Origin: Piromyces finnis finn
Taxonomy: Eukaryota > Fungi > Neocallimastigomycota
Direction: 5' to 3'
NCBI GenBank assembly: GCA_002104945.1
Contig: MCFH01000007.1
Location: 186,001-250,000, forward strand
Length of the DNA stretch: 64,000 nt
Below are positions 41,081 to 64,000 of this stretch, in pieces (within the stretch, counting starts at the first letter, position 1; each line of letters begins with the position of its first letter). Made by a program: the position numbers and the translations under genes. The notes under the pieces were generated by a model that saw only the letters and a list, made by a program, of their open reading frames with translations, was not told the origin of the DNA and did no database searches.

Positions 41081-41679
41081 ATTGTTTACCTCACAAATTC
41101 GCATAATAAATTAACCCACAAAAATCAAAATTTCATATGAAAGTAATAGTCTAAATTTTATAATATGTTTATTTTTTATATTGAAATACTAAATTAATTT
41201 TATAAACTTTTTAAGTAAGCAATTATTAAATTTAGAAATTGTTATTTTTAAGAATTATAAATTTATATATATTTTTTTTAAATTTTAACTTTTTATTTAT
41301 TTAAAAAATATTAATTATTAAAAAATTTGTTAGAAAAATAGAAAAAAGAATGTTAGAATAAAAAACAATAACATTTATTTGAAAAATTAAATTTTTTAAA
41401 AAATAATTTAGAATATAAATAAGATGAACTAAGAAAACGAAAAGTAAAAAAAAGAAAAAACTAAATATAAGAAAAGCCCTATTTTTAAATAATAAAATAA
41501 AAATCTTATAACTTTATAAAGATTGAAATAATAATAATGCAATAAATTAATTAATAAATAAATAAAAAAAAAAAAAAAAATAAAAAAAGTAGTGAAAAAT
41601 CTCTTATTTTCTTTTTTTTTTTTGAAGTTATTATAATTGTGTCAAATATGTGTGATCTTATTAGATTACATATAATAAT

Positions 41680-42055
41680 TCATGCCTTTTGCTATTGGCC
41701 AGCAATGGTCAATGTTCAAAAGGTTTGAAGCAACATCCAAGAGCGTCAATGCTGAAGAAACAGTAAGACAGGCCAGGAGGGCCAGCGCAACCAATGGAGA
41801 TCATAATTTTGTCCCATGATAAAATTTTGATCTTTGGCTCGGTGTCCCATTGGAAGTCAAATACAATTATTATACTTTAGTATGATAGTGGCTTTCTTAC
41901 TTTAATTAAAATTACTAGAATACATTATACCCAATTTTTATTCATTTGTGTTTATTTAAACATATTTTTTTTTATTTTTATTTTATTTTAATTTTTATAT
42001 TACATGTATTATAATTTTAATTAAATTAATAATAAAGTTTAAAATATTTGATGCC

Positions 42056-42088
<33 letters not shown>
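41680..42088 (+). mobile_element. 5'-truncated LINE 3' fragment with 30-nt poly(A) and 13-bp TSD
   Basis: Near-identical to the element 3' end (tcatgccttttgctattggcc...gatgccgtt(A)n). It is flanked by tacatataataat at 41667-41679 and 42089-42101. Confidence 0.92.
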
Positions 42089-42093
<5 letters not shown>

Positions 42094-42094
42094 A

Positions 42095-42660
42095 TAATAA
42101 TAGTAATAGTTCTAATGATCCAGTGAATATTAATGTGTATGATTATTTTAGTGTGTGAAATAAAATATTTAAATTCCTTCTTGGGGGAAGATGTTTTAAA
42201 AATATCAAATTACAATTCAAGGAATGGAAAGAATTTTGCAAATGTCAGACTTAATTTGGCAATGTAATAGCGGAACTATCATGCATTTTGTTATTGGCCA
42301 GCAATGGTCAATGTTCAAAAGGTTTGAAGCAACATCCAAGAGCTGAAGAAACAGTAAGACAGGCTAGGAGGGCCAGCGCAACCAATGGAGATCATAATTT
42401 TGTTCCATGATGAAATTTTGATCTCTAGCTCTGTGTCCCATTGGAAGTCAAATACAATTATTATACTTTAGTATAATAGTGACTACTTTAATTAAAACTA
42501 CTAGAATATATTATACCCAATTTTTATTCATTTATGTTTATTTAAACATATTTTTTTTTATTTTTATTTTTGTGTTTATTTCTAATTTTGTTTTTTTATA
42601 TCATGTATTATAATTTTAATTAAATCGATAAAGTTTAAAATATTTGATGCCTTTTAAAAT
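42095..42660 (+). mobile_element. Older, decayed 3' fragment of the same LINE family
   Basis: Aligns from atagtaatagttctaat...gtgaatattaatgtgtatgat through the 3' UTR to gatgcc, with stops and internal deletions. Confidence 0.85.
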
Positions 42661-42779
42661 AAATATTAGATTACATTATTAATTTGTGTTAAAAATTTTT
42701 CATTTTTTTTAGGAGTATTCTCACTAATGAAATATCTTAAATGACAGTGATTTTATTTATGAACGAAATTCATTTATTA

Positions 42780-47779: not shown

Positions 47780-48699
47780 ATGGCCCACTCTCCACGTAAT
47801 AGCTTTTTGAAACCAGGAATCGCTCGTAAGTCCCGTTCTAAGACTTTCGGTCTTCACGCCCTCTACAAGAAGAACAAGGCCGCTATCGCTGCTGCCAAGC
47901 CAGAAGCTCCAAAGACCATCACCAAGACCGTCGGTGGTGCTAAGAACGGTAACACCAGAGTTGTTCCAGCTGTTAAGGCTCCACGCTTTTACCCAGCTGA
48001 AGACGCTCCAGTTCCAAAGGTTAACCGTAAGACCGTTGGTACCGCTACCCTCCGTAAGTCCATTACTCCAGGTACCGTTCTCATCATCTTAGCCGGTAGA
48101 TTCCGTGGAAAGCGTGTTGTTTTCTTAAAGCAATTAAGTTCTGGATTACTTCTTGTTACTGGTCCATACAAGGTTAACGGTGTTCCACTCCGTCGTGTTA
48201 ACCAAGCTTACGTTGTTGCCACTTCTACTAAGATTGAACTTCCAGCTGTCGCTGAAAACATCGATGACGCTTTCTTCCAAAAGAAGGCTGAAGTAAGTTT
48301 AAAATAATAAACTTGATATTATGTATAAAATGTGATTTAGATAATAGAAAATGTGTGATAGTATGATAAAATACTGTTATAAGCATTCGACAGGATGATA
48401 TAATTAGATACTTTTATGTATAAAAATTCAATATATATATGATAAATATTACAATTGGGAATATAAATTATATCATTAATATATAAGTATATATTAAATA
48501 AGTATGAAATATATTAACAAATTTAAATTTACTAATTTAATAAATATTATAGAAGAAGGATGCCGAAAGAGTTGCTGCCCAAAAGGATGTTGATGACAAG
48601 ATTCTTGCTGTTGTTAAGAAGACTCCTTTATTAAAGGCTTACCTTAACGCCAAGTTCACTCTCACCAAGGGTCAAACTGTTCACAACATGAAGTTCTAA
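47780..48699 (+). CDS. RPL6: 60S ribosomal protein L6 (eL6), 219 aa; exons 47780-48292, 48553-48699
   Basis: [65 protein letters not shown] and C-terminal KTPLLKAYL...MKF. GT-AG intron. Confidence 0.97.
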
Positions 48700-48899: not shown

Positions 48900-49354
48900 A
48901 ATTTAAACTGCAATACAATTTAAAACGAAGTTCTTTATGATTATTCGAATGATTAATACAATTTAGCAATTAAGTGTTACCATGTATATGAAAGATATGA
49001 TATTTTGTAATAAAGTTTTATAAATAGAATTACATCAGTAATTAGTTATAAAAATGGTGGATCAGAAATATTAAATTGTTAGTTTTTGATAGTAACATTG
49101 TTTTCAAAGGTGGAATATTTATTAAAATAAAAAAAGCGAATTTTGAAGGCAATAATTGCAGTATAAAGTAAAAGATATTTTTTATGTTTTTAGTGGTAAT
49201 AAAAAATGTTAATGAAAGTTAATGAAAATTCTATTAATAATAGTAATATTCCTTTTTAGATAATTTAAATTTTTTGAGTAGTTATGTTAGAAATTTATAT
49301 AATAATTTAGTTAATAGTAATAGTTTTAATAATTCGGTGAATATTAATGAGTAT
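48900..49354 (+). mobile_element. Heavily decayed LINE remnant forming the left edge of the array
   Basis: Ends in aatttagttaatagtaatagttttaataattcggtgaatattaatgagtat, matching the element post-Asn region. The upstream part aligns only patchily, so the left boundary is approximate. Confidence 0.55.
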
Positions 49355-49363
49355 GCTAATGTC

Positions 49364-49390
49364 AAATTAGATGGACAATGTTGCAAGTGT
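49364..49390 (+). repeat. Two stacked target-site duplications
   Basis: aaattagatggacaat (49364-49379) recurs at 51629-51644. aatgttgcaagtgt (49377-49390) recurs at 50664-50677. Each right copy directly follows a poly(A) tail. Confidence 0.9.
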
Positions 49391-50633
49391 TTAGAAAATA
49401 CACGTGGTGCAAATCAAGTAGGACACTTGATAAAAAACTAAAGAAACATGGAGATGTTAAAGCAGTTAAAAACTTTTATTGGAAAGATCTCAAAGGGAAT
49501 TCAATCAAAGCGCAATATTATGATGATAATAAATTTATTGAAACTAAAGATTTTATTAAATTATGTTATGAATACCCAGAGTTTGCCTATGGCTTCTACT
49601 GGCTATTGAAAGCAAGAAGCGGATATAAGTTGGATGCTAGAGTTGCCAAAGCTGCTAAATTTGTTGATCCAATTTGTCCTAACTACTGTCCATGTTGCAA
49701 GTGTGGTGTTCAAAGTATTAAACATTGGTTATTAGATTGTCCAACATTTAGAGATATCCGTATTAAACATTATGATTCCATAGTCCAGCTATTAAATTTT
49801 TTCAGTCAACGTAATTCCAATAGTCCTATCAATAATAATGAAATTGATAATGTCAGTAGAGATAGCAATAACAGTAATAGTAATAGTAACAATAATAATA
49901 ATAACAATAGTAATAATAACAATAGTAGTAATAGTAATAATAGAAATAGTAATAATAACAATAGTAGTAATAGAAATAATAATATTAATAATGATAGCAA
50001 TAGTGAAGATAATAATTCTAATTTAGATAGTAATTTAGTTAATGATAGTAATAGTTCTAATAATCCGGTGAATATTAATGTGTATGATTATTCTAGTGTG
50101 TGCAGTAAAATATTTAAATTCCTTCTTGGGGGAAGAAGTTTTAACAATATTAATTACAATTCAAGGGAATGGAAAGAACTTTGTAAGCGTCAGATTCAAT
50201 CTGGTACTAATGAAGGAACACCATTCTTGACGGTAACCGCGGAACTTCTAACCAAAATCATGCCTTTTGCTATTGGCCAGCAATGGTCAATGTTCAAAAG
50301 GTTTGAAGCAACATCCAAGAGCGTCAATGCTGAAGAAACAGTAAGACAGGCCAGGAGGGCCAGCGCAACCAATGGAGATCATAATTTTGTCCCATGATAA
50401 AATTTTGATCTTTGGCTCGGTGTCCCATTGGAAGTCAAATACAATTATTATACTTTAGTATGATAGTGGCTTTCTTACTTTAATTAAAATTACTAGAATA
50501 CATTATACCCAGTTTTTATTCATTTGTGTTTATTTAAACATATTTTTTTTATTTTTATTTTTATTTTTAATTTTTTATTACATGTATTATAATTTTAATT
50601 AAATTAATAATAAAGTTTAAAATATTTGATGCC

Positions 50634-50665
<32 letters not shown>
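49391..50665 (+). mobile_element. 5'-truncated LINE copy A (youngest of the nest), intact C-terminal frame, 29-nt poly(A)
   Basis: Starts at ttagaaaatacacg, encodes the CCHC knuckle, Asn-rich tract and C-terminus (ORF 49378-50397), and ends gatgccgtt(A)n at 50637-50665. Confidence 0.95.
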
Positions 50666-50667
<2 letters not shown>

Positions 50668-51582
50668 TTGCAAGTGTGGAGATCAAAGTATTAAACATTG
50701 GTTATTAGATTGTCCAACATTTAGAGATATCCGTATTAAACATTATGATTCCATAGTCCAGCTACTAAATTTTTTCAGTCAACGTAATTCTAATAGTCCT
50801 ATCAATAATAATGAAAATGTTAATATCAGTAGAGATAGCAATAACATTAATAGTAATAGTAACAATAGTTGTAATAACAATAGTAATAGTAACAATAGTA
50901 ATAATAACAATAGTAGTAATAGAAATAATAATATTAGTAATGATAGCAATAGTGAAGATAATAATTCTAAATTAGATAGTAATTTAGTTAATGATAGTAA
51001 TAGTTCTAATAATCCGGTGAATATTAATGTGTATGATTATTCTAGTGTGTGCAGTAAAATATTTAAATTCCTTCTTGGGGGAAGAAGTTTTAACAATATT
51101 AATTACAATTCAAGGGAATGGAAAGAACTTTGTAAGCGTCAGATTCAATCTGGTACTAACGAAGGAACACCATTCTTGACGGTAACCGCGGAACTTCTAA
51201 CCAAAATCATGCCTTTTGCTATTGGCCAGCAATGGTCAATGTTCAAAAGGTTTGAAGCAACATCCAAGAGCGTCAATGCTGAAGAAACAGTAAGACAGGC
51301 CAGGAGGGCCAGCGCAACCAATGGAGATCATAATTTTGTTCCATGACAAAATTTTGATCTTTGGCTCGGTGTCCCATTGGAAGTCAAATACAATTATTAT
51401 ACTTTAGTATGATAGTGGCTTTCTTACTTTAATTAAAATTACTAGAATACATTATACCCAATTTTTATTCATTTGTGTTTATTTAAACATATTTTTTTTT
51501 ATTTTTATTTTATTTTAATTTTTATATTACATGTATTATAATTTTAATTAAATTAATAATAAAGTTTAAAATATTTGATGCC

Positions 51583-51631
<49 letters not shown>
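50666..51631 (+). mobile_element. 5'-truncated LINE copy B with 46-nt poly(A)
   Basis: Starts at tgttgcaagtgt within the zinc knuckle, has a shorter Asn tract, includes ORF 51017-51346, and has poly(A) at 51586-51631. Confidence 0.95.
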
Positions 51632-51633
<2 letters not shown>

Positions 51634-51835
51634 AGATGGACAATTCTCGAAATCTTTTGATGTGAAGAGAGGAGTCCGTCAAGGTTGCCTACTTTCTCCT
51701 ATTCTCTTTAATCTCTTTATTAATGATATATTTAAAGAGTGCGAAGATCTAGGAGTCAGTTTAGGTGACACTCAATGCTGTGGTGGACTTTTTGCAGATG
51801 ATATAGTTATTTGTGCTCCAACAAGAGGATGCTTA
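51632..51835 (+). mobile_element. Left piece of LINE copy C (RT motifs GVRQG to FADD); its first bases lie at 49355-49379
   Basis: Collinear with 55347-55550 of the full-length copy (6 mismatches in about 205 bp). It breaks off at ggatgctta. Confidence 0.9.
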
Positions 51836-54800
51836 TTCCTCTTGGGAACGTGCCTTCATTTATTTAATAAATGTAGTTTCTCAAGGGGGTCTACTCATGC
51901 TCATGGTACTGAGAGAGTAGGAAGAATTAAATCCAAGTATTGCGCAATGGATGCTTGGTTAGTCTTTAAGGGAAAATTATTAGGACTAAGCTCATGGTAC
52001 TGAGCGATTAAAAAACATTTATCCATCGAATTTAAGTATTTGATGAATAAGTTGAATGTTTGATATTCAGGTAAGTTTGTATAGTATTTAATTAGAAGAG
52101 TAATACATTTTGTTGCTGTATTTTTTCTTTTATTCATGTATTCATGTAGTACTACTCTTCTCTTGTAAGAATCCAATGTAGGCAACTTTAGCATTTGCAT
52201 TGTATTTTTATATTCATGTAGCTATTGTTGTATTGTTTCTTGTAAGAGACTGATTCACTCTACATCATGTAAAAATACTATTCACAAGCTTTCTGGTGTC
52301 GGCATTCTTGATTCAAATTTTTTACCAATTTAAATATTTAATGAAAAGTAAAGTCAAACAAGTTTAGTGTCAAAAAGCGAATCGAATTTACTAACAACAA
52401 ACCAAAACTAGAATTTTTAAAGAAAATTTACAACTAGAATTCAAAAAAAGAAACTTTAAACTTTAAACAAAGCATCGTAACAATTTTTGTACTATCCAGT
52501 ACTTTTAAGAAGAGAGAGAGAGACAGATTTTTTTCCATATACGTTATATTTATAATTTTTATTAGTATTTATTTTATATTCAATATTTTTTAATTAGAAT
52601 TAATTATCATGTCAGTCCTTTATATTAAAGATAAGAATTATATCAGACGTGGTACCCGGTCTTATGGTATCCCCTTAGATGATATTCGCTCCTTCTTTAT
52701 CCGTGGTATTCGATCATGGTCAGTAAATATGCTATGGGAAAAACTCGAGGTTATTCTAGAAGATAAATTTAATTCAGTTATTAGTGTTAAATATTTTCAG
52801 ACTTTCAATGATCACTTTTTCTTAGTCAAGGTTCATGGTTCATCGAAAGATTGTATTAAAATCTTACACATGTTAAAGAAGAAACTTTCAGTTACCTCAA
52901 TTTCCTTTTCAGCTCGTAGTAGAAGGAATCACAAATACACTTTTTCCACTCTCAAACGTAAAATTTTAGTTTCTAATAAACATCAACTTTCAATTCAACA
53001 ATCAATTCAACAATCAGTTCAACAATCTCATCAACAATCCGATCTTCAACAAGATCTTCAACAGGATCTTCAACAAGTTTCCCATCATGAAAATATTCCA
53101 GATCTACAGCAAACACAATTTCAATCTCAACATTCAACAATTAATTCTAATAGTTCTATCAACTCTGATAACAGTTCAATAGTTGATAGTTCTTCAGTCT
53201 CACAGCCATCTAGTAATAGTTCTACTTATTCCTCTGATGCATCATCCATTAATAACGATGACTTTAATAATAATAATAATAGCAACGATTCTTCCTCATC
53301 CAACAAGCCTGATAACTTTTCTTTTTGTCTTAGTTGGAACACCAATGGGTGGAATCACGAAAAGAGAGATAGTATTAGCTATTTCACAGCTATTTTCAAA
53401 CCATTATTTTTATGTTTCCAAGAAACTGGTAATGGTTCTGGATCGAATACAGATTATCCTTGTCGTGTTACTTTGCGAAACTATAGACACTTTTTCAAGA
53501 AAGCTGACGAATCAGTTCCTGGAATGAGAGGTTTATATTTAGGTTTTCACAATTCATGTCAAGCCTCACTTGAAAACTTCTCTGGAAAGTATATTATTTC
53601 TATTTATACTTTTAGTCTCTGGAATAGATTCAAATGCTCGATTGGAAATGTTTATATGCCTCATAGTCATCACAACATCTATGTTGATCATGCAAAGTTA
53701 GAAGTTCGCTTGTGGTTACAAACTCATTCATCCCATCCATCGATTCTTGTTGGTGATTTTAATATGTCTAAAGTAAAATTATCCAACTGGTTATCAACTA
53801 ATGGATTAGGAGATTGGGAAATTCTTCCGCTTAGAGGGTCGACTATCTCTTGGACTCGAGGTGATCAATCTTCCGACATTGACCATGCTCTTATCAATTC
53901 GAAGATGAAAGATCTTATTCACTCAGGATCATTTATAAATAATTTTTATCCTGTATCAGACCATAAGCCACTTCTTATTAATGGTAAAATTATTCCTATG
54001 GAAGATTTTTCTAATGACTTTAATGTTCCTAAGAAAATTCTGAAATGGAATAGATTAAAATGTATTGAGGAAAAGGAATCTATTCTCAGTCATAATAAAT
54101 TCCAAATTCTTTCAGCAAAATTCAACGATCCTAATGTTTCTACAGATGAACTTTCCAAAGAATTTACTTCAACTGCTTTTTCAATTGCAGACGAGCTCAG
54201 TATTACCTCAGCAAATAATGTTATAAAGTCTTCATTTCATATTTCACAACAAATTTTTAATCTTCAAAAAATCAAAATGAAGTTGTATAAGAGATTTAAA
54301 AAGAAAGAATTTATGATATAGATGAATTTATTAAAAGAATTAAAATCTACCGTAAGCTCATTGATTACATCCACAAAAGATGTAATGAATTTAGGAAGCA
54401 AGAATATCTTCATTGGATTAAAACAGGATGTGAGTATATGAAGAGTTATAATCCTAAGAAGGCCTGGAAATGGATCAAGAAAACTGCAAAAATTGGAAAA
54501 GATACTTTCTTTATTGCTCAACCAATTAAAAATAAAAATGGAGAATTAGTTGTTGCTACGGAAGAACAACTAGAAGTGTGGCATGATCATTTCGAAAAGC
54601 TTGCATCAGATCCAAGTGGTGTAAGTCTTGATTTGGAGCATTGGTATGAAGAACCAACGAATAAACGTTTTTCACTTCCTATGCTTGATGAGTGGGATAT
54701 CAACCAAGATGTTAGTATTGATGAAGTCAAGTCAGCTATCCTCTCTACTCCAAATTATAAAGCATCAGGTCCGGATGGTATTCCAATTGAATTTTACAAA

Positions 54801-57427
54801 GCATTAATTCCATCAAGTAATGGTTCTAATAATGCTACAGATAATAATTCTTCTGGCAATACCACTTCAGATAATGATGCTCATGGGTTAAATTTTATTC
54901 TTAAATTATTCAACCGTATTTGGGATGGAGATTTCCCCAACTCATGGAATGAATCCAGTATTGTTTCTATTCCTAAGAAGGGAGATTTGACAGATTGTGA
55001 TAACTATCGAGGTATATCACTTATCAATAATGGTATTAAGTTGATTTCCAAAATTGGCACCACTAGAATCTCAGAATATGGTCTAAAGGATAATTTCATT
55101 AGACCTGAACAATTTGGTTTTCGAAAAAAGGAAGAAAGTATCAGTCTTTTCATTTCAACCCAAGAAATATGCCGTAGACGTCAATTAGATAATAAAGAGA
55201 CATATTTGGCCTTTTTAGATCTCAGGAAAGCATACGATTCAGTCCCAATCGGTAATATTCTCCATAAATTAGATTATTTAGGAATCCGAGGTAAGAGTTT
55301 ACAATTTATCAAAAATTTATATTTAACATCTAAGGCTAATGTCAAATTAGATGGACAATTCTCGAAATCTTTTGATGTGAAGAAAGGAGTCCGTCAAGGT
55401 TGCCCTCTTTCTCCTATTCTCTTTAATCTCTTTATTAATGATATATTTAAAGAGTGCGAAGATCTTGGAGTAAGTTTAGGTGACACTCGATGCTGTGGTG
55501 GACTTTTTGCAGATGATATAGTTATTTGTGCTCCAACAAGAGGATGCTTAAAAAAGATGCTTAGAAGAGTTAATGAATGGGCATTGTATAATGAAATGGA
55601 ATTTGGTATCCAGAAATGTTCAACGATGGTGATTCGTCCTGAATCAATAGAAAATCAGAACAAGAGATATCCAACATTTTACTTAGCAGGACAACCCATT
55701 CCAACTACTGATTGTTATACTTATCTTGGTGTTCCATTTGATAAGAATCTGTCCCTTAAACCAGTTATTAAAACTCTTAATAACAAGGTTTTGAAAGGAC
55801 TTTTCTCAGTCAGTAAATTCTTAAGAAATCCTAATATTCCTATTCCTTTCAAAAAGCTAGTACTTAACTCACAAGTGATTAGCAGAGTTTCATACTTTGC
55901 ACCATTACTTGGATCCAACAAAGCTAGGTCTAGGATTGCTCAGAAGCATGTTAACAAAGGAATACGATGGGTTGCAGGAGTTCATAAAGCTGTATCGTTT
56001 ATATCTTTATATTCTATCTCAAAAGATTTGAATATTCCTCCATTGTCAGCCAAATGTGCGTTAGCTCAGGTTAGATGTTTTAACAAATGGAAAAACTCGA
56101 ATTGTATTATCTCACACCTTGTCAATTACATTCCTAAATTTAGAAAATACACGTGGTGCAAATCAAGTAGGACACTTGATAAAAAATTAAAGAAACATGG
56201 AGATGTTAAAACAGTTAAAAATTTTTATTGGAAAGATCTCAAAGGGAATTCAATCAAAGCGCAATATTATGATGATAATAAATTTATTGAAACTAAAGAT
56301 TTTATTAAATTATGTTATGAATACCCAGAGTTTGCCTATGGCTTCTACTGGCTATTGAAAGCAAGAAGCGGATACAAGTTGGATGCTAGAGTTGCCAAAG
56401 CTGCTAAATTTGTTGATCCAGTTTGTCCTAACTACTGTCCATGTTGCAAGTGTGATGTTCAAAGTATTAAACATTGGTTATTAGATTGTCCAACATTTAG
56501 AGATATCCGTATTAAACATTATGATTCTATAGTCCATCTATTAAATTTTTTCAGTCAACGTAATTCCAATAGTCCTATCAATAATAATGAAAATGTTAAT
56601 ATCAGTAGAGATAGTAATAATATTAATAGTAATAGTAATAATAGTAGTAATAATAATTACAATAGTAATAGTAACAATAGTAATAATAACAATAGTAATA
56701 ATAACAATAGTAATAATAACAATAGTAATAATAACAATAGTAGTAATAGAAATAATAATATTAGTAATGATAGCAATAGTGAAGATAATAATTCTAATTT
56801 AGATAGTAATTTAGTTAATGATAGTAATAGTTCTAATAACCGGTGAATATTAATGTGTATGCTTATTCTAGTGTGTAAAATAAAATATTTAAATTCCTTC
56901 TTGGGGGAAGAAGTTTTAACAATATTAATTACAATTCAAGGGAATGGAAAGAACTTTGTAAGCGTCAGATTCAATCTGGTACTAATGAAGGAACACCATT
57001 CTTGATGGTAACCGCGGAACTTCTAACCAAAATCATGCCTTTTGCTATTGGCCAGCAATGGTCAATGTTCAAAAGGTTTGAAGCAACAGCCAAGAGCGTC
57101 AATGCTGAAGAAACAGTAAGAAAGGCCAGGAGGGCCAGCGCAACCAATGGAGATCATAATTTTGTACAATGATAAAATTTTGATCTTTGGCTCGGTGTCC
57201 CATTGAAAGTCAAATACAATTATTATACTTCAGTATAATAATGGCTTTCTTACTTTAATTAAAATTACTAGAATACATTATACCCAATTTTTATTCATTT
57301 GTGTTTATTTAAACATATTTTTTTTTATTTTTATTTTATTTTAATTTTTATATTACATGTATTATAATTTTAATTAAATTAATAATAAAGTTTAAAATAT
57401 TTGATGCCGTTAAAAAAAAAAAAAAAT
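51836..57427 (+). mobile_element. Full-length non-LTR retrotransposon (APE endonuclease + RT + CCHC knuckle), copy D, with two 1-bp deletions
   Basis: APE: SWNTNG, FQETG, VGDFN, SDIDH, SDHKP. RT: SGPDGIP, NYRGISL, QFGFR, FLDLRKAYDSV, GVRQGCPLSPILFNL, FADD, YLGV. Knuckle: CPCCKC..HWLLDC. Poly(A) at 57412-57426. The 5' boundary is inferred from the break in copy C. Confidence 0.93.
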
Positions 57428-59282
57428 TTGTATAATGAAATGGAATTTGGTATCCAGAAATGTTCAACGATGGTGATTCGTCCTGAATCAATAGAAAATC
57501 AGAACAAGAGAGATCCAACATTTTACTTAGCAGGACAACCCATTCCAACTACTGATTGTTATACTTATCTTGGTGTTCCATTTGATAAGAATCTGTCCCT
57601 TAAACCAGTTATTAAAACTCTTAATAACAAGGTTTTGAAAGGACTTTTCTCAGTCAGTAAATTCTTAAGAAATCCTAATATTCCTATTCCTTTCAAAAAG
57701 CTAGTACTTAACTCACAAGTGATTAGCAGAGTTTCATACTTTGCACCATTACTTGGATCCAACAAAGCTAGGTCTAGGATTGCTCAGAAGCATGTTAACA
57801 AAGGAATACGATGGGTTGCAGGAGTTCATAAAGCTGTATCGTTTATATCTTTATATTCTATCTCAAAAGATTTGAATATTCCTCCATTGTCAGCCAAATG
57901 TGCGTTAGCTCAGGTTAGATGTTTTAACAAATGGAAAAACTCGAATTGTATTATCTCACACCTTGTCAATTACATTCCTAAATTTAGAAAATACACGTGG
58001 TGCAAATCAAGTAGGACACTTGATAAAAAATTAAAGAAACATGGAGATGTTAAAACAGTTAAAAATTTTTATTGGAAAGATCTCAAAGGGAATTCAATCA
58101 AAGCGCAATATTATGATGATAATAAATTTATTGAAACTAAAGATTTTATTAAATTATGTTATGAATACCCAGAGTTTGCCTATGGCTTCTACTGGCTATT
58201 GAAAGCAAGAAGCGGATACAAGTTGGATGCTAGAGTTGCCAAAGCTGCTAAATTTGTTGATCCAGTTTGTCCTAACTACTGTCCATGTTGCAAGTGTGGT
58301 GTTCAAAGTATTAAACATTGGTTATTAGATTGTCCAACATTTAGAGATATCCGTATTAAACATTATGATTCTATAGTCCAGCTACTAAATTTTTTCAATC
58401 AACGTAATTCCAACAGTCCTATCAATAATAATGAAAATGTTAATATCAGTAGAGATAGTAATAATATTAATAGTAATAGTAATAATAGTAGTAATAATAA
58501 TTACAATAGTAATAGTAACAATAGTAATAATAACAATAGTAATAATAACAATAGTAATAATAACAATAGTAATAATAACAATAGTAGTAATAGAAATAAT
58601 AATATTAGTAATGATAGCAATAGTGAAGATAATAATTCTAATTTAGATAGTAATTTAGTTAATGATAGTAATAGTTCTAATAACCGGTGAATATTAATGT
58701 GTATGCTTATTCTAGTGTGTAAAATAAAATATTTAAATTCCTTCTTAGGGGAAGAAGTTTTAAGAATATTAAATTACAATTCAAGGGAATGGAAAGAACT
58801 TTGCAAGTGTCAGATTCAATTTGGCACTAACGAAGGAACACCATTCTTAACGGTAACCGCGGAACTTCTAACCAAAATCATGCCTTTTGCTATTGGCCAG
58901 CAATGGTCAATGTTCAAAAGGTTTGAAGCAACAGCCAAGAGCGTCAATGCTGAAGAAACAGTAAGAAAGGCCAGGAGGGCCAGCGCAACCAATGGAGATC
59001 ATAATTTTGTACAATGATAAAATTTTGATCTTTGGCTCGGTGTCCCATTGAAAGTCAAATACAATTATTATACTTCAGTATAATAATGGCTTTCTTACTT
59101 TAATTAAAATTACTAGAATACATTATACTCAATTTTTATTCATTTGTATTTATTTAAACTTATTTTTTTTATTTTTATTTTTAATTTTATTTTTTAATTT
59201 TTTATATAACATGTATTATAATTTTAATTAAATTAATAATAAAGTTTAAAAACATTTGATGACGTTGAAAAAAAAAAAAAAA
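57428..59282 (+). mobile_element. LINE copy from mid-RT to poly(A), probable right piece of copy C
   Basis: Resumes at ttgtataatgaaatgg (element position about 55584), is near-identical to 55584-57426, and has poly(A) at 59268-59282. Confidence 0.92.
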
Positions 59283-59605
59283 TGTTCAAAAGAATTTAAA
59301 CAACAACCAAGAGCGTCAATACTGAAGAATCAATAAGACAGGCCAGTAGGTTAGCGAAACCAATGAAGATCATAATTTTATTCTCTGACAAAATTTGACC
59401 TATGAGGCTTAGTCCCATTGGAAGTTGGATACAGTTAATGTACTCAAGTATAATAATAGCATTTTTACATTAATTAAAATTAGAATATATCATTATATTC
59501 ATTTTTTTTTAATTCATATATAGTAAATTAAATTTATTTTTAAATTTTTATTTAAATATTAATAAAAATTTTAAAATATTTGCTGATGTAATAAAGAAAA
59601 AAAAG
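59283..59605 (+). mobile_element. Diverged short 3' LINE fragment
   Basis: tgttcaaaag...ccaagagcgtcaat.ctgaagaa...gatcataatttt...cccattggaagt, ending in an A-rich tail. Confidence 0.8.
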
Positions 59606-59639
59606 ATGATGATAATTATAATTCTTTTAATTTGAATAG

Positions 59640-59905
59640 TTTTTGTTTGCTTAAATAGTAATATAGTTTATAATAATTCTAATAATTCAATATTAAATAA
59701 AATTAATATATATTTTAGATTATTGGAGTGAATATTAATGTGTATAATTATACTAGCGTATGCAAGAAATATAAAAATTCCTTCTTAAGGGAAGAAGTTT
59801 TAGCAATAACAATTTAAAAGAATGGAATGAACTTTATATGTATCAAATTAAATAGGATAAGCACTTATAAAATATCTCTATTTCTGATGGTCATTCCAGA
59901 ACTTC

Positions 59906-59955
<50 letters not shown>

Positions 59956-60235
59956 TATTATGTTGTTGATTCTTAAATGATTTAAGCATAAATCAAGAGA
60001 TCAGTAGGGTTAGCGTAATCAATGGAGATTATAATTTTGTCCCATGATAAAATTCGACCTTTGTGGTCAAATACAATTGTTATACTAGTGGTCTTCTTAT
60101 TTTGATTAAAATTACAATAATACATTAAATTATACACATATTTTGCTCATTAAATCTATTTTTTAAATTTTTATTTTTAAAATATATATCATAATTCTAG
60201 CTAAAGTAATAAAGGTTTCCATTAAAAAATAACAT
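59640..60235 (+). mobile_element. Decayed 3' LINE fragment containing an (AAT)n expansion
   Basis: gtgaatattaatgtgtat, aattccttctt..gggaagaagtttt, aatggagat.ataattttgtcccatgataaaatt, and (AAT)n at about 59907-59955. Confidence 0.75.
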
Positions 60236-60324
60236 AAAAATTCTCTTGTATTAATATTTCTAGTATTCTAGTGCACTTGATTTAAATTTTATATACATAG
60301 ACTATTTAATTAAATTTATGATAC

Positions 60325-61520
60325 CGACTGTCCCAACTTATGGAATGAATCCATTATTATTTTTATTCCTAAGAAATTAAATTTGTTAGATTGAGATAAA
60401 TATTTTGGTATCTTATTTACCAATTGATACAAAGTAATTTTAAAAATTGCTACTACTAAAATTTCAAGATATATTATTAATAAAACTTTAATCAAACCAG
60501 AAACATGTTAATAAGGAAATATTATAAATATAATAGGTTGAGGTGTTTGTACAGCTGTATCATTTATATCTGTATGTTCTATTACAAAACTATTTATTAT
60601 TAACAAATGGAAAAGATTTAAATTAGGTCATTTTTTCTTATTCAGTTATATTTCTAAATTTAGAGAATATAGATAATACAGATTGAGTAGTACTTTAAAT
60701 AAAAATTAAAAGAAACATGGAAATGTTAAAGCAGTTATAAGCTTTTATTAGAAAAAACTTCAAAAGAAAATTAATTATAGTCCTTATGATAAAAACAAGT
60801 TTGAAGATGTAGAAATTATAGATTTTATTAAATTTTGTTATGAGCATCTTAAATATTCATATGGTTTCTAGTGATTATTGGAAGAAGGAAACAGATATAA
60901 ATTGGTTACTAAATTAGGTGATCCAGTTTGTCCGAATTACTGTGAAAATCAAAGAATCAAAGTATTCAACATTAGCAAAATATCTAATATCTAGTGATAT
61001 TGGTATTAAACATTTATAATTAATTATCCAAAATTTCAGTTTCTTATCAAAATTCATTTAAATAATTCTATTAATACTACTACTACTACTACTTTAATAA
61101 TAATAATAATAATTTGATGAATATTAATATAAATAATACAATCGTTATAGTATATGCAAAAAATATTTAAATTCCTTTTCGTGAAATAAGTTGTAATAAT
61201 AATAATAATTTAAGTGAATGAAAAGAACTTTTTAAGTGTCAAACTAAATCAGTCACTTATAAAGAATCTCCATTTTTAACAGTTAATATATATCTTTTTA
61301 CTAAAATCATGCCTTATGTTATTGGTCAATAAAATAGAAAATAGGCAATATTTAAATGGTTGAAGTAACAACCAAGTGTCGATACTGAAGAAATAGTTAA
61401 GAAAAGCCAGCGGAATCAGGGAAATAATGATATTCAAATTTTGTTTTTTGAGAATATTTGATCCTAACCTTTAGTTATATTGAAAGTTATACAATTATAC
61501 AATTATCAGTAGTGTAGTTT
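60325..61520 (+). mobile_element. Old, internally deleted LINE remnant (RT start to 3' end)
   Basis: cccaacttatggaatgaatcca..attcctaagaaa, aagaaacatgga.atgttaaagcagtta, gatccagtttgtcc.aattactg, ctaaaatcatgcctt. Confidence 0.75.
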
Positions 61521-62517
61521 AATCTTAATATTAAAATATTATATCCATTTTGATTTGTAATTCATTTTACTTTTTTTTTAATTTTAAATTTATTTTTTAA
61601 TTGAGCTTGTATATAATTCTGTTTAATAAAATAAATAATATAATAACTGTTTTAAAATATTTATTGCTGTTCAAATTTTTAAGGAAGAAAAAAAATAAAA
61701 TAAATGTTAATTTTTTGTATAAAAATGGGTTTAAATTTTTTATTAGAAAAAAGTAAATTTGTTTTTTTTTTAATTTTAATCTGCGATAGTTAATGTTCAA
61801 TAAATTTAAAACAATAACTGTGTTAATAATCGAGAGTGTAGATTAATATGGTGTTGTCCCAGAAGAGTATACTTTTCTTAACAATAACTTTTGAAATTTT
61901 TGAAAAGTAAATATATTTTAATATACGAAAGCTTTATTATGATTCGCTAAATCTTTTTAGTAATTAAACCCAGTAGTTTTTTTTTTTTTTTTTTAAATAA
62001 ATAGTATGTGATATAAATTATAATTTTTTAAAAATTATATCTTCTAATATTATCCAATGTGAACTTTTTAATAATAACATCATTTTTAATAAATTAATAA
62101 AAAGGAAAATGAAAAGGTAATTATGAAAAATTCTATACATTCCAAACTATAATATTAAATTAAATGTTCAACCTTTAATTATCTTCTAATAATTATCTCA
62201 AACATAATGTCAATTATGAAATTGGAAGGCAATATGGCATATTCTAATTTTTGTATAGAAAAAAATATAAACTAAATGTATTAGAAATATGTATGTAATG
62301 ACGAATAATATAAACAAAATAATTAAATGTACACTAATAAATGTATATGTAAATAAAATTTATTTTATTAAGTAAATATAAATAATAATGTGATTTCTTT
62401 ATTTACAAAATTAAAAATTTTTTTTTTTTCGAAATCTAAATTATTAATTTAGATAAGATTTAAGAATAGAAAAACGAATATTGTTTTTAATACAATTATA
62501 TATATTAAAACAATAAT

Positions 62518-63814
62518 ATGACTGATTATATACCAGTAGAAAAAAGTGAAAATAATTTAATTGTAGATGTTAATAATGAACCAGATTATCAACCTGATAG
62601 TTTTAAAAAAACATACAATAAAAAAGGAAATAGAGAAGGTTATATTACAATTGCTATTTCATTTATATTATGGACATTATTCTATAAACTCAGTTTAGTT
62701 GGTGGTGATTTAGGGTGGATAAAGGATCATTTATTCTTGATTGGTTCATTACTTTTTACATCTTTTCTATCATATAGTGTGATGCTTTGGAGAGTAGCAT
62801 TTTTGAGAATTTCAAAAAGATTAAAGCTACTTAGTTATTGTTTAATAATTTTTTCCCTTGTAGGATTTTTAATATATGATCATGGTGAACTTTTTGATTA
62901 CCATGGTATGTATAATTTTATGGTATTTTGTTTATTTGTTTTCATTGGAGATGGAATTGCTATCATTATATATTTTTGGTACAAATTATTTGGTAGAAAA
63001 AAGTTCATTATTTCGTTTACTTCATTTATTTTAATTATTGTAGTTATCTTAATTATTTCACTAAGACATTATATGAATATTTGGGGTAATGGTTATCTAA
63101 ATAAAAAAATTGAAGAAGGAGGGCAAAATTGTAAAGTTAGAAGACCAATTCCATGGTTTGATTTACTTCCAAGAGGTACACAGAACTTTTGGACTGGATC
63201 TCAAAGCTGTGCTAGAGAAGAAAAATTTGATGCTTTTTTTGATTCCACTGAAGAAAACAAATTAGTAGTATCTGGTTGTCCAAAAAGTGAAAAAATAACT
63301 TTTATGATATTACCTGAAACTCGTAATTTAACTTTCTATCAAAAGCAAGATGATATTTTTCGAGAATCAGTAATGAGCTTAGCGGAAGAAAAGATATATG
63401 ATTATACCGAGCCCATTAATCTTCCAGATATAGAAGCAGTATATATTACCTGTGGTGAACAAAGCAAATTAGTTACTCGTTTAGCTGGAAGAAGAGTTGA
63501 ACCACAGGTAGACAAAGTGCCAAAAGAAAAATTAAATGTTCTATTGATGTATTTTGATGCTGTTTCACGTAGACAGTTTTTCCGTAACCTTCCTAAAACA
63601 GTTAAAAAACTTGAAAGTCTAAATAATTCAGGTATCATGCATTTAAACCAGTTCTTCCGTTATGGTGTTATTGGTTTTAATACTAATAGAAATTCGTTAG
63701 GATTATTTGCCGGTGTACAATTAGAGAGAGGTAAAAAAGGTGTCCCAATTTGGGAAGATTATAGAAATCATGGATATGTAGCTGGTGCAGCTGATGATCA
63801 TTGTGAAGATTGGG
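62518..63814 (+). CDS. Multi-pass membrane protein with a DUF229/alkaline-phosphatase-superfamily domain, first exon; gene continues beyond the window
   Basis: About five hydrophobic segments in the first 190 aa, then LNVLLMYFDAVSRRQFFRNLPKT and GFNTNRN, typical of DUF229. A donor G/GTATGT at 63815 means ORF codons after 63814 are intronic. Confidence 0.7.
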
Positions 63815-64000
63815 GTATGTATATTATTATTATTTATCATTGTTTTATATTGAAATTATTACTAATTAAATATTTATTTATTTTTTTTTTCATATTTAAC
63901 ATTATTGCTCATTATTTTATTAATATCTTTAAAATATTATGCTTTCGAACCATTTATTTCAATCATATATATACGTTCAATTCATGATATAATTATATTA

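Follow-up and report, generated by a model that had tools for sequence, protein, structure and literature searches.

The window analysed here is a stretch of 64,000 nucleotides from the anaerobic gut fungus Piromyces finnis (Neocallimastigomycota; contig MCFH01000007.1 of assembly GCA_002104945.1, positions 186,001 to 250,000), and between 49 and 61.7 kb it holds a pile of copies of one family of long interspersed nuclear elements (LINEs). We propose, with a probability that we put at roughly two in three, that this pile was built through target-primed reverse transcription, in a series of co-oriented insertions in which a single, very abundant L1-like LINE landed inside its own older copies at a short word carried by the element itself. 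As far as can be judged from the sequence, the insertion of a copy B into an older copy X, followed by that of a copy A over the 5' junction of B, appears to be the most economical account of the 5' end of the pile. Copies and relics are referred to by the letters of Table 1, and the coordinates of the pieces are measured against the near full-length copy D, which served as the ruler.

Nested duplications at the 5' end of the pile

The 16-mer AAATTAGATGGACAAT is found at 49364-49379 and again at 51629-51644, directly 3' of the 46-nt A run of B, and its only other copy in the window is the native site at 55344 in the full-length copy. Likewise, the 14-mer AATGTTGCAAGTGT is present in the window only at 49377-49390 and at 50664-50677, directly 3' of the 29-nt A run of A, and for both words 0 occurrences are expected from shuffles. 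An earlier, sequence-only reading of this DNA had placed the two repeats behind the poly(A) tails and had described 49355-49395 as three distant parts of the element joined end to end; on these points it is borne out, since both repeats are exact, the string reads as quoted and its breakpoints match contigs of the family. In fact, contigs from a DNA run of the same organism leave the window at 49355, 49390 and 51835 and continue into native element sequence, which identifies these positions as true breakpoints relative to the family.

Copy A is nested in the first 11 nt of B, and its duplication starts in the last 1-3 nt of the duplication of B. The claim that A was inserted across the 5' junction of B, after B, agrees with this arrangement, in which both repeats are true duplications stacked in last-in-first-out order, and so does the argument that simple template jumping is insufficient, as it leaves the 11-nt re-occurrence of the start of B unexplained. 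The further claim that B lies inside the 5' end of a copy named C has to be divided: B does lie in an older copy, but C is not a separate copy and corresponds to the body of X. Segment C ends at D-equivalent position 55550 and segment E, on the other side of D, restarts at 55584, the two being collinear across a 33-nt gap. Since C and E belong to the subfamily of D, and E has the same one-base deletion as D, the 25-nt stub at 49355-49379, C at 51629-51835 and E at 57427-59282 are, on sequence grounds, one older copy, X. Within X, B is flanked by a 16-bp duplication, while the entry of D removed 33 bp of the target and left no duplication. At its 5' boundary X overlaps relic Y by 6 nt (GCTAAT), and its tail adjoins relic Z.

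In the proposed series the old relics Y, Z, W and V would have been in place first and X would have landed in the relic Y/Z; B would then have landed in X at AATGTC^AAAT (the bottom-strand nick is written as ^ on the top strand), with a 16-bp duplication, and A at ATGGAC^AAT in the upstream copy of the duplication of B. Because the nick of A would lie inside that upstream copy, the 13-14-bp duplication of A would span the first 11 nt of B. Copy D would have entered X at ATGGGC^ATT, with the 33-bp deletion, after X but at any time relative to B and A. The family displays A15 to A46 tails, five distinct 5' ends and duplications of uniform length (13, 13, 13-14 and 16 bp), as expected of separate staggered cuts. 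An insertion of B into the poly(A) tail of A was rejected, as it would need an 11-nt filler matching the start of B by chance.

A long-read mis-join in such a repeated family, or an unequal exchange between copies, might also have produced the joints at 49355-49395. The family is extremely abundant, short-read contigs break at the edges of the element and no spanning read has been placed; among the Logan contigs of four runs, which break at repeats and skip A runs, none crosses the junctions and none represents an intermediate allele, and the unique contig next to the array ends at 49349. The pieces are thus placed in order by the assembly alone. Nevertheless, a mis-join would not make two exact, properly nested repeats of normal duplication length, and the same geometry recurs at 41.6 kb in partly unique DNA; we regard an artefact as very improbable.

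A second stacked pair at 41.6 kb

The geometry of A on B is found again where copy F sits on copy G (41659-42676). The duplication of F consists of the last 5 nt of the duplication of G plus the first 8 nt of G, which recur at 41672-41679. As G is old and F is young, the two represent separate insertion events, and since F landed on an old junction, a fresh junction was not required. The idea that the targeted junction must be fresh does not survive this pair, in which G, old and with a decayed tail, was nevertheless hit by F, which is 99.5% identical to B and ends in a pure A30. The last-in-first-out nesting, the normal lengths of the repeats and the age gap between F and G all fit separate insertions. 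Two other accounts of this locus were discarded: retrotransposition of F and G as one unit, because there is no promoter and the copies differ in age, and a 28-nt duplication for G starting from TGTC^AAAT, because an extra deletion would be needed. The 8-mer TGTCAAAT at 41640-41647 is its only plus-strand copy in the window outside LINE sequence.

LINE reverse transcriptases (RTs) jump templates, and one complex integration may be envisaged in which the RT, on reaching an RNA end, switches to the poly(A) of a further RNA, the inner "duplications" being the result of aborted 13-bp pairing between nascent complementary DNA (cDNA) and the cut top strand rather than of independent staggered cuts. 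Template jumping of LINE RTs is mentioned in passages of PMC2718515 and PMC11371274. An event of this kind is consistent with the similar age of A and B (97.3% identity) and with a locus of Anaeromyces robustus (L002 9911-11161), where two different 5'-truncated LINE tails are joined via A41 with no duplication between them, and one ~82-nt duplication encloses both. On paper, a single event with jumps and aborted pairing can produce the pattern, but it fails on the ages of F and G: it demands copies of equal age, whereas G has a decayed tail and ~8% divergence and F, which ends in an uninterrupted A30, is almost the same as B. In addition, the normal duplication length of the inner repeats would be coincidental, the nick of A on a cognate word would be a further coincidence (~0.3%), and B in X would require 9 nt of cDNA to be trimmed. 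Such an event is, in our view, improbable.

At the A. robustus locus (MCFG01000088, L002 9799-11247) the chimeric LINE pair adjoins a LINE tail of 29 nt that carries A24 and is flanked by a 14-bp duplication, TTAATTGAACAACT, and the ~82-nt duplication includes that older tail; long duplications and template-jump chimeras are thus present in a related genus.

A candidate landing word

Six nick contexts are available in the window (Table 1), of which three fall on ATGGNC^AWT, one on a near-cognate and two off the word. In D, ATGGNCAWT has three sense occurrences (55351, 55577 and 57058) and one antisense occurrence, and TGGNCA occurs only five times on the sense strand. The nicks of A, of D into X and of X into Z correspond exactly to the three sense ATGGNCAWT sites of D. 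In a motif-free permutation, in which the best triple among four random sites of D was scored, 9 of 13 identical columns were reached in 2 of 200,000 trials (P ~1e-5). Outside the window, among the 5' junctions of full-length copies seen in contig joints, the cognate word stands exactly 13 nt upstream in one of four, the background being 0.7% per position. From these six events of one window, on which the word was defined post hoc, we infer that the endonuclease, or the ribonucleoprotein (RNP), prefers ATGGNC^AWT and near-cognates such as TGTC^AAAT, although not exclusively. Given the two off-word nicks, this would be a sequence preference at most, and not a fixed target of the R1/TRAS/Tx1 type.

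The word would lie largely upstream of the nick, with the remainder in the duplication, and consequently would be kept 5' of each duplication-forming insertion and lost on the poly(A) side. Since it would remain intact on the 5' side, re-hits would stack newer copies 5' and give rise to polar, head-to-tail arrays. The stacked scar would then arise incidentally, from the 13-nt spacing of two landing words within the RT gene together with a stagger of 13-16 bp. Because the ATGGAC^AAT of the RT gene of X is located 13 nt downstream of the nick of B, it would have been copied into the duplication of B, and A would have used the upstream copy; in the stub of X the left duplication of B occupies 49364-49379 and the landing word, ATGGACAAT, 49371-49379. 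We hypothesize that the position of A at the 5' end of B is explained by the landing word, with no need for junction sensing. The proposal that the LINE senses its newly formed 5' junctions, or nicks them again, is not supported, given the nick of A on ATGGAC^AAT and the presence of the same word at two nestings away from a junction. Elsewhere in the genome, contig joints reveal full-length copies nested at several internal positions of the element. The word seems to explain the stacked scar better than the recognition of a fresh end.

Several observations weigh against serial insertion at a self-carried word. No reads cross the junctions, and the word was derived from six events of one window, the left half of the X-into-Z site being itself deduced. 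The nicks of F (TTAGAT^TACAT) and G (GATCT^TATTAG) are off the word, that of F lying 5 nt from the 5' junction of G, and the nick of B lies 3-9 nt from the 5' junction of X. Three of the five nested events fall 10 nt or less from an older 5' junction, which is above the prediction from the word only, and a 3:1 ratio of sense to antisense words is insufficient for the co-orientation of at least 12 fragments between 41.6 and 61.7 kb.

Targeting directed by junctions or by homology, in which the RNP, or sense RNA paired with the antisense strand, nicks at the end of the homology, that is, at the older 5' junction, whether fresh or old, would yield co-oriented arrays growing at their 5' side. It is in accordance with the insertion points of A, F and B, which lie between -5 and +9 nt from the 5' junctions of the older copies B, G and X, respectively, with the site of F, which has no landing word, and with the orientation of the fragments, all alike over 20 kb and mostly abutting head to tail. 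Nevertheless, the cognate word fully accounts for the nick of A, the insertions of D into X and of X into Z are internal and at cognate words, full-length copies are found at several internal positions in contig joints, and the junction-proximal events are only three. We know of no APE-type LINE that senses junctions. As the origin of the pile this mode of targeting is unlikely, and it is likewise quite unlikely that, beyond any word, the 5' boundaries of existing copies, old or new, direct the RNP, possibly by pairing of sense RNA with the antisense strand and a nick at the end of the homology. If true, an APE-type LINE would here be targeted through the homology of its RNA, with polar growth and the newest copy at the 5' side.

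The landing word was also sought at the left edge of the relics at 43.6 kb, and this candidate was dropped as the word sits inside the relic. An antisense landing word, read as TGTCCA on the plus strand, is found 4-6 nt from the 5' truncation of B (56436-56441), which may be a coincidence.

Comparison with other array-forming elements

Self-nesting arrays are known from algae, with Zepp, and from Cryptococcus, with Cnl1. Passages of PMC8226300 (citing Higashiyama 1997) and of PMC3446292 describe Zepp, an L1-clade LINE of Chlorella and Coccomyxa, and ZeppL of Chlamydomonas as inserting into existing copies and forming arrays composed mostly of 5'-truncated 3' ends. The Piromyces family is similar to Zepp in that new copies lie in older copies of the same family, co-oriented and rich in 3' ends, as seen in the five nested events and in contig joints genome-wide. 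In contrast to Zepp, which forms one, probably centromeric, cluster per chromosome, the array described here is interstitial and lies beside genes; for Zepp no landing word was found in the literature searched, the original Zepp descriptions aside. In Cryptococcus neoformans, Cnl1 is described in parts of 10.1101/2021.08.11.455996 as building large subtelomeric arrays of full-length and fragment copies, with dynamics partly due to recombination. Both are array-building fungal LINEs of the type lacking long terminal repeats (non-LTR), but Cnl1 is subtelomeric whereas the present array is interstitial, and the portion of that text which was searched holds no junction-level anatomy of duplications.

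McGurk and Barbash (10.1101/158386) traced tail-to-internal tandems of non-LTR elements to two independent insertions at the same locus, favored at matches to a preferred target, and R1 tandems and P-element dimers to double insertions at one preferred site. The stacked pairs resemble these tandems in the two insertions at one locus and in the target duplication at the tandem junction. In those tandems, however, the second hit reuses the cut and a whole duplication lies between the copies, whereas in the window 8-13 nt separate the second nick from the first; the part of the first duplication found between the tandem copies is only 1-3 nt long in A on B and 5 nt in F on G. HeT-A, TART and TAHRE of Drosophila are added terminally to chromosome ends, without target duplications. 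The pile shares with them polar head-to-tail arrays and variable 5' truncation, but it is interstitial rather than telomeric and displays clear 13-16-bp duplications. With human L1 the element shares APE and RT domains, poly(A), 5' truncation, duplications of 13-16 bp and 5' junctions that show microhomology or filler. The nick consensus of human L1 is TTTT/AA; unlike human L1, the Piromyces element would be nicked after C in a G+C-containing word, in a genome of ~20% G+C, and differs further in the APE and RT ORFs (open reading frames) of D, which are in different frames, and in a 122-bp monomer at the 5' end.

The locus thus joins the known self-nesting LINE arrays, and is distinct in its interstitial site, in the shifted second nick and in its candidate landing word. 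It represents a clean, datable nested series with intact duplications, and the cause that it suggests is an APE endonuclease with a preference for a G+C-containing word, which the element itself bears within the RT gene and the ORF tail while the genome is otherwise ~80% A+T. A word that survives each duplication-forming insertion would give polar head-to-tail growth in harmless DNA. If this held genome-wide, it would account for the tolerance of the fungus toward an abundant LINE family and would assign to a fungal L1-like endonuclease a target specificity that can be tested.

Anatomy of the pile

The features are collected in Table 1; self-comparison of the window by blastn is noisy in such A+T-rich DNA. 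The five nested events of the window are all on the plus strand, as are all LINE fragments between 41600 and 61700 (F, G, the relics at 43.6-45.3 kb, Y, A, B, X, D, Z, W and V). Many contig joints end at 51838, the 5' end of D, and segment E starts immediately 3' of the word ATGGGC^ATT. Relic Z may be part of the same old copy as Y, with ~200 bp lost. Around the older relics P1-P3, Z, W and V, which are too decayed, no target-site duplications were found. As the sequence-only reading had it, the array is interstitial, with genes on both flanks, namely a ribosomal-protein-like ORF on one side (47780-48307) and a further ORF on the other (62518-63987). These adjacent ORFs are also on the plus strand, and the ribosomal-protein-like transcript contig stops at 49059, ~90 nt before relic Y.

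Table 1. Coordinates of the LINE copies, their duplications and their nick contexts in the window (D-equivalent, corresponding position in copy D).
Feature	Position	Strand	Remarks
8-mer TGTCAAAT, nick site of B	41640-41647	+	15 nt upstream of nick of G
13-bp duplication of G, TATTAGATTACAT	41659-41671 (left), 42664-42676 (right)	+	two window matches, 0.04 expected
13-bp duplication of F, TACATATAATAAT	41667-41679 (left), 42089-42101 (right)	+	last 5 nt of duplication of G plus first 8 nt of G
Copy F	41680-42088	+	young, 5'-truncated (last ~380 nt), A30 tail; 97.7% identity to D, 99.5% to B
Copy G	42094-42663	+	old, 5'-truncated, decayed A tail, indels; ~91-94% identity to A, B, D, F
Relic Y	49151-49360	+	old fragment, Asn-rich C-terminal ORF part; D-equivalent 56652-56866; 69% identity overall, 86% in last 70 nt
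5' stub of older copy X	49355-49379	+	D-equivalent 55335-55359; 100% identity
Left copy of 13-14-bp duplication of A, AATGTTGCAAGTGT	49377-49390	+	49380-49390 = first 11 nt of B
Copy A	49390-50665	+	5'-truncated, from D-equivalent 56139; ORF tail intact, A29 tail; 94.8% identity to D
Right copy of duplication of A	50664-50677	+	directly 3' of A29
Copy B	50666-51631	+	5'-truncated, from D-equivalent ~56441; A46 tail; 91.7% identity to D
Right copy of duplication of B	51629-51644	+	directly 3' of A46 run of B
X body segment (C)	51629-51835	+	D-equivalent 55344-55550; 97% identity
TT filler	51836-51837	+	5' of copy D
Copy D	51838-57426	+	near full-length, A15 tail; 5' end CCTCTTGGGAAC; APE ORF 52609-54321; RT ORF 54438-56846
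Segment E, rest of X	57427-59282	+	D-equivalent 55584 to end; A15 tail; 97-98% identity; subfamily of D, with the frameshift of D
Relic Z	59281-59607	+	old copy; ~74% identity; begins AATGTTCAAAAG = right half of ATGGTC^AATGTT
Relics W and V	59612-61690	+	still older, head-to-tail; 63-73% identity
Nick context of A			GATGGAC^AATGTT
Nick context of X into Z			AATGGTC^AATGTT; right half seen in Z, left half inferred from family
Nick context of D into X			AATGGGC^ATTGT
Nick context of B			AATGTC^AAAT
Nick context of G			GATCT^TATTAG
Nick context of F			TTAGAT^TACAT

The element and its family

The element appears to be an L1-like LINE with an APE endonuclease, an RT and a poly(A) tail, and its earlier designation as APE-type stands, PF03372 lying upstream of PF00078. 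In Pfam searches the APE domain (PF03372) was located at residues 241-452 of a 570-aa ORF (E 1e-6) and the RT domain (PF00078) in the ORF downstream (E 3e-34). Compared with solved structures, the RT finds its top matches in the Protein Data Bank (PDB) with human L1 ORF2p (E 1e-32, as opposed to 5e-18 for R2), which suggests, among these structures, a greater proximity to L1. The closest relatives of the RT ORF 54438-56846, at 71% identity or less, are proteins without a name, and its named relatives are from Orpinomyces, Anaeromyces and Neocallimastix, which places the host among the anaerobic gut fungi. Exact look-up of three proteins of the window gave no match. The 3' end of the element reads ...GATGCCGTT, followed by a pure A run. 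The window has a G+C content of ~20%.

The family is clearly very abundant in the genome: in contigs from a DNA run of the same organism, depth reaches 2-6 x 10^5 on the element against ~180-200 on unique neighboring DNA, these values being summed word depths and not copy number. A scan of the window for further family tails or short interspersed nuclear element (SINE) copies found none besides F, A, B, D, E and one old copy, and no family tails on the minus strand in the whole window.

Several features of the copies are worth recording. In D the RT ORF, which runs from 54438, does not share the frame of the APE ORF, which ends at 54321. Full-length copies begin CCTCTTGGGAAC and are preceded by 1-2 filler bases. 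Nine DNA contigs and one RNA contig step back by 122 bp, leaving the element at 51959 and resuming at 51838 after an intervening GC, which indicates that other copies have at least two 122-bp 5' monomers whereas D has one. The one-base deletion common to D (56830-56850) and to segment E of X (58675-58695), AATAACCGG as opposed to AATAATCCGG in A and B, stops the ORF ~100 codons short of the usual stop of the family; its presence in both suggests either a lesion inherited in the subfamily or a dispensable ORF tail.

Metagenomes scanned with the element 3' end plus poly(A) gave 0 matches, and the 5' end gave one chance match, on an apparently unrelated G+C-rich contig. The segment 50943-51483 of copy B is matched over 541 nt, with one difference, by a gut metagenome contig from 2024 (run X11), and a second metagenome (X9) likewise contains pieces of the element, which indicates that the LINE family, or the species that carries it, occurs in independent gut samples.

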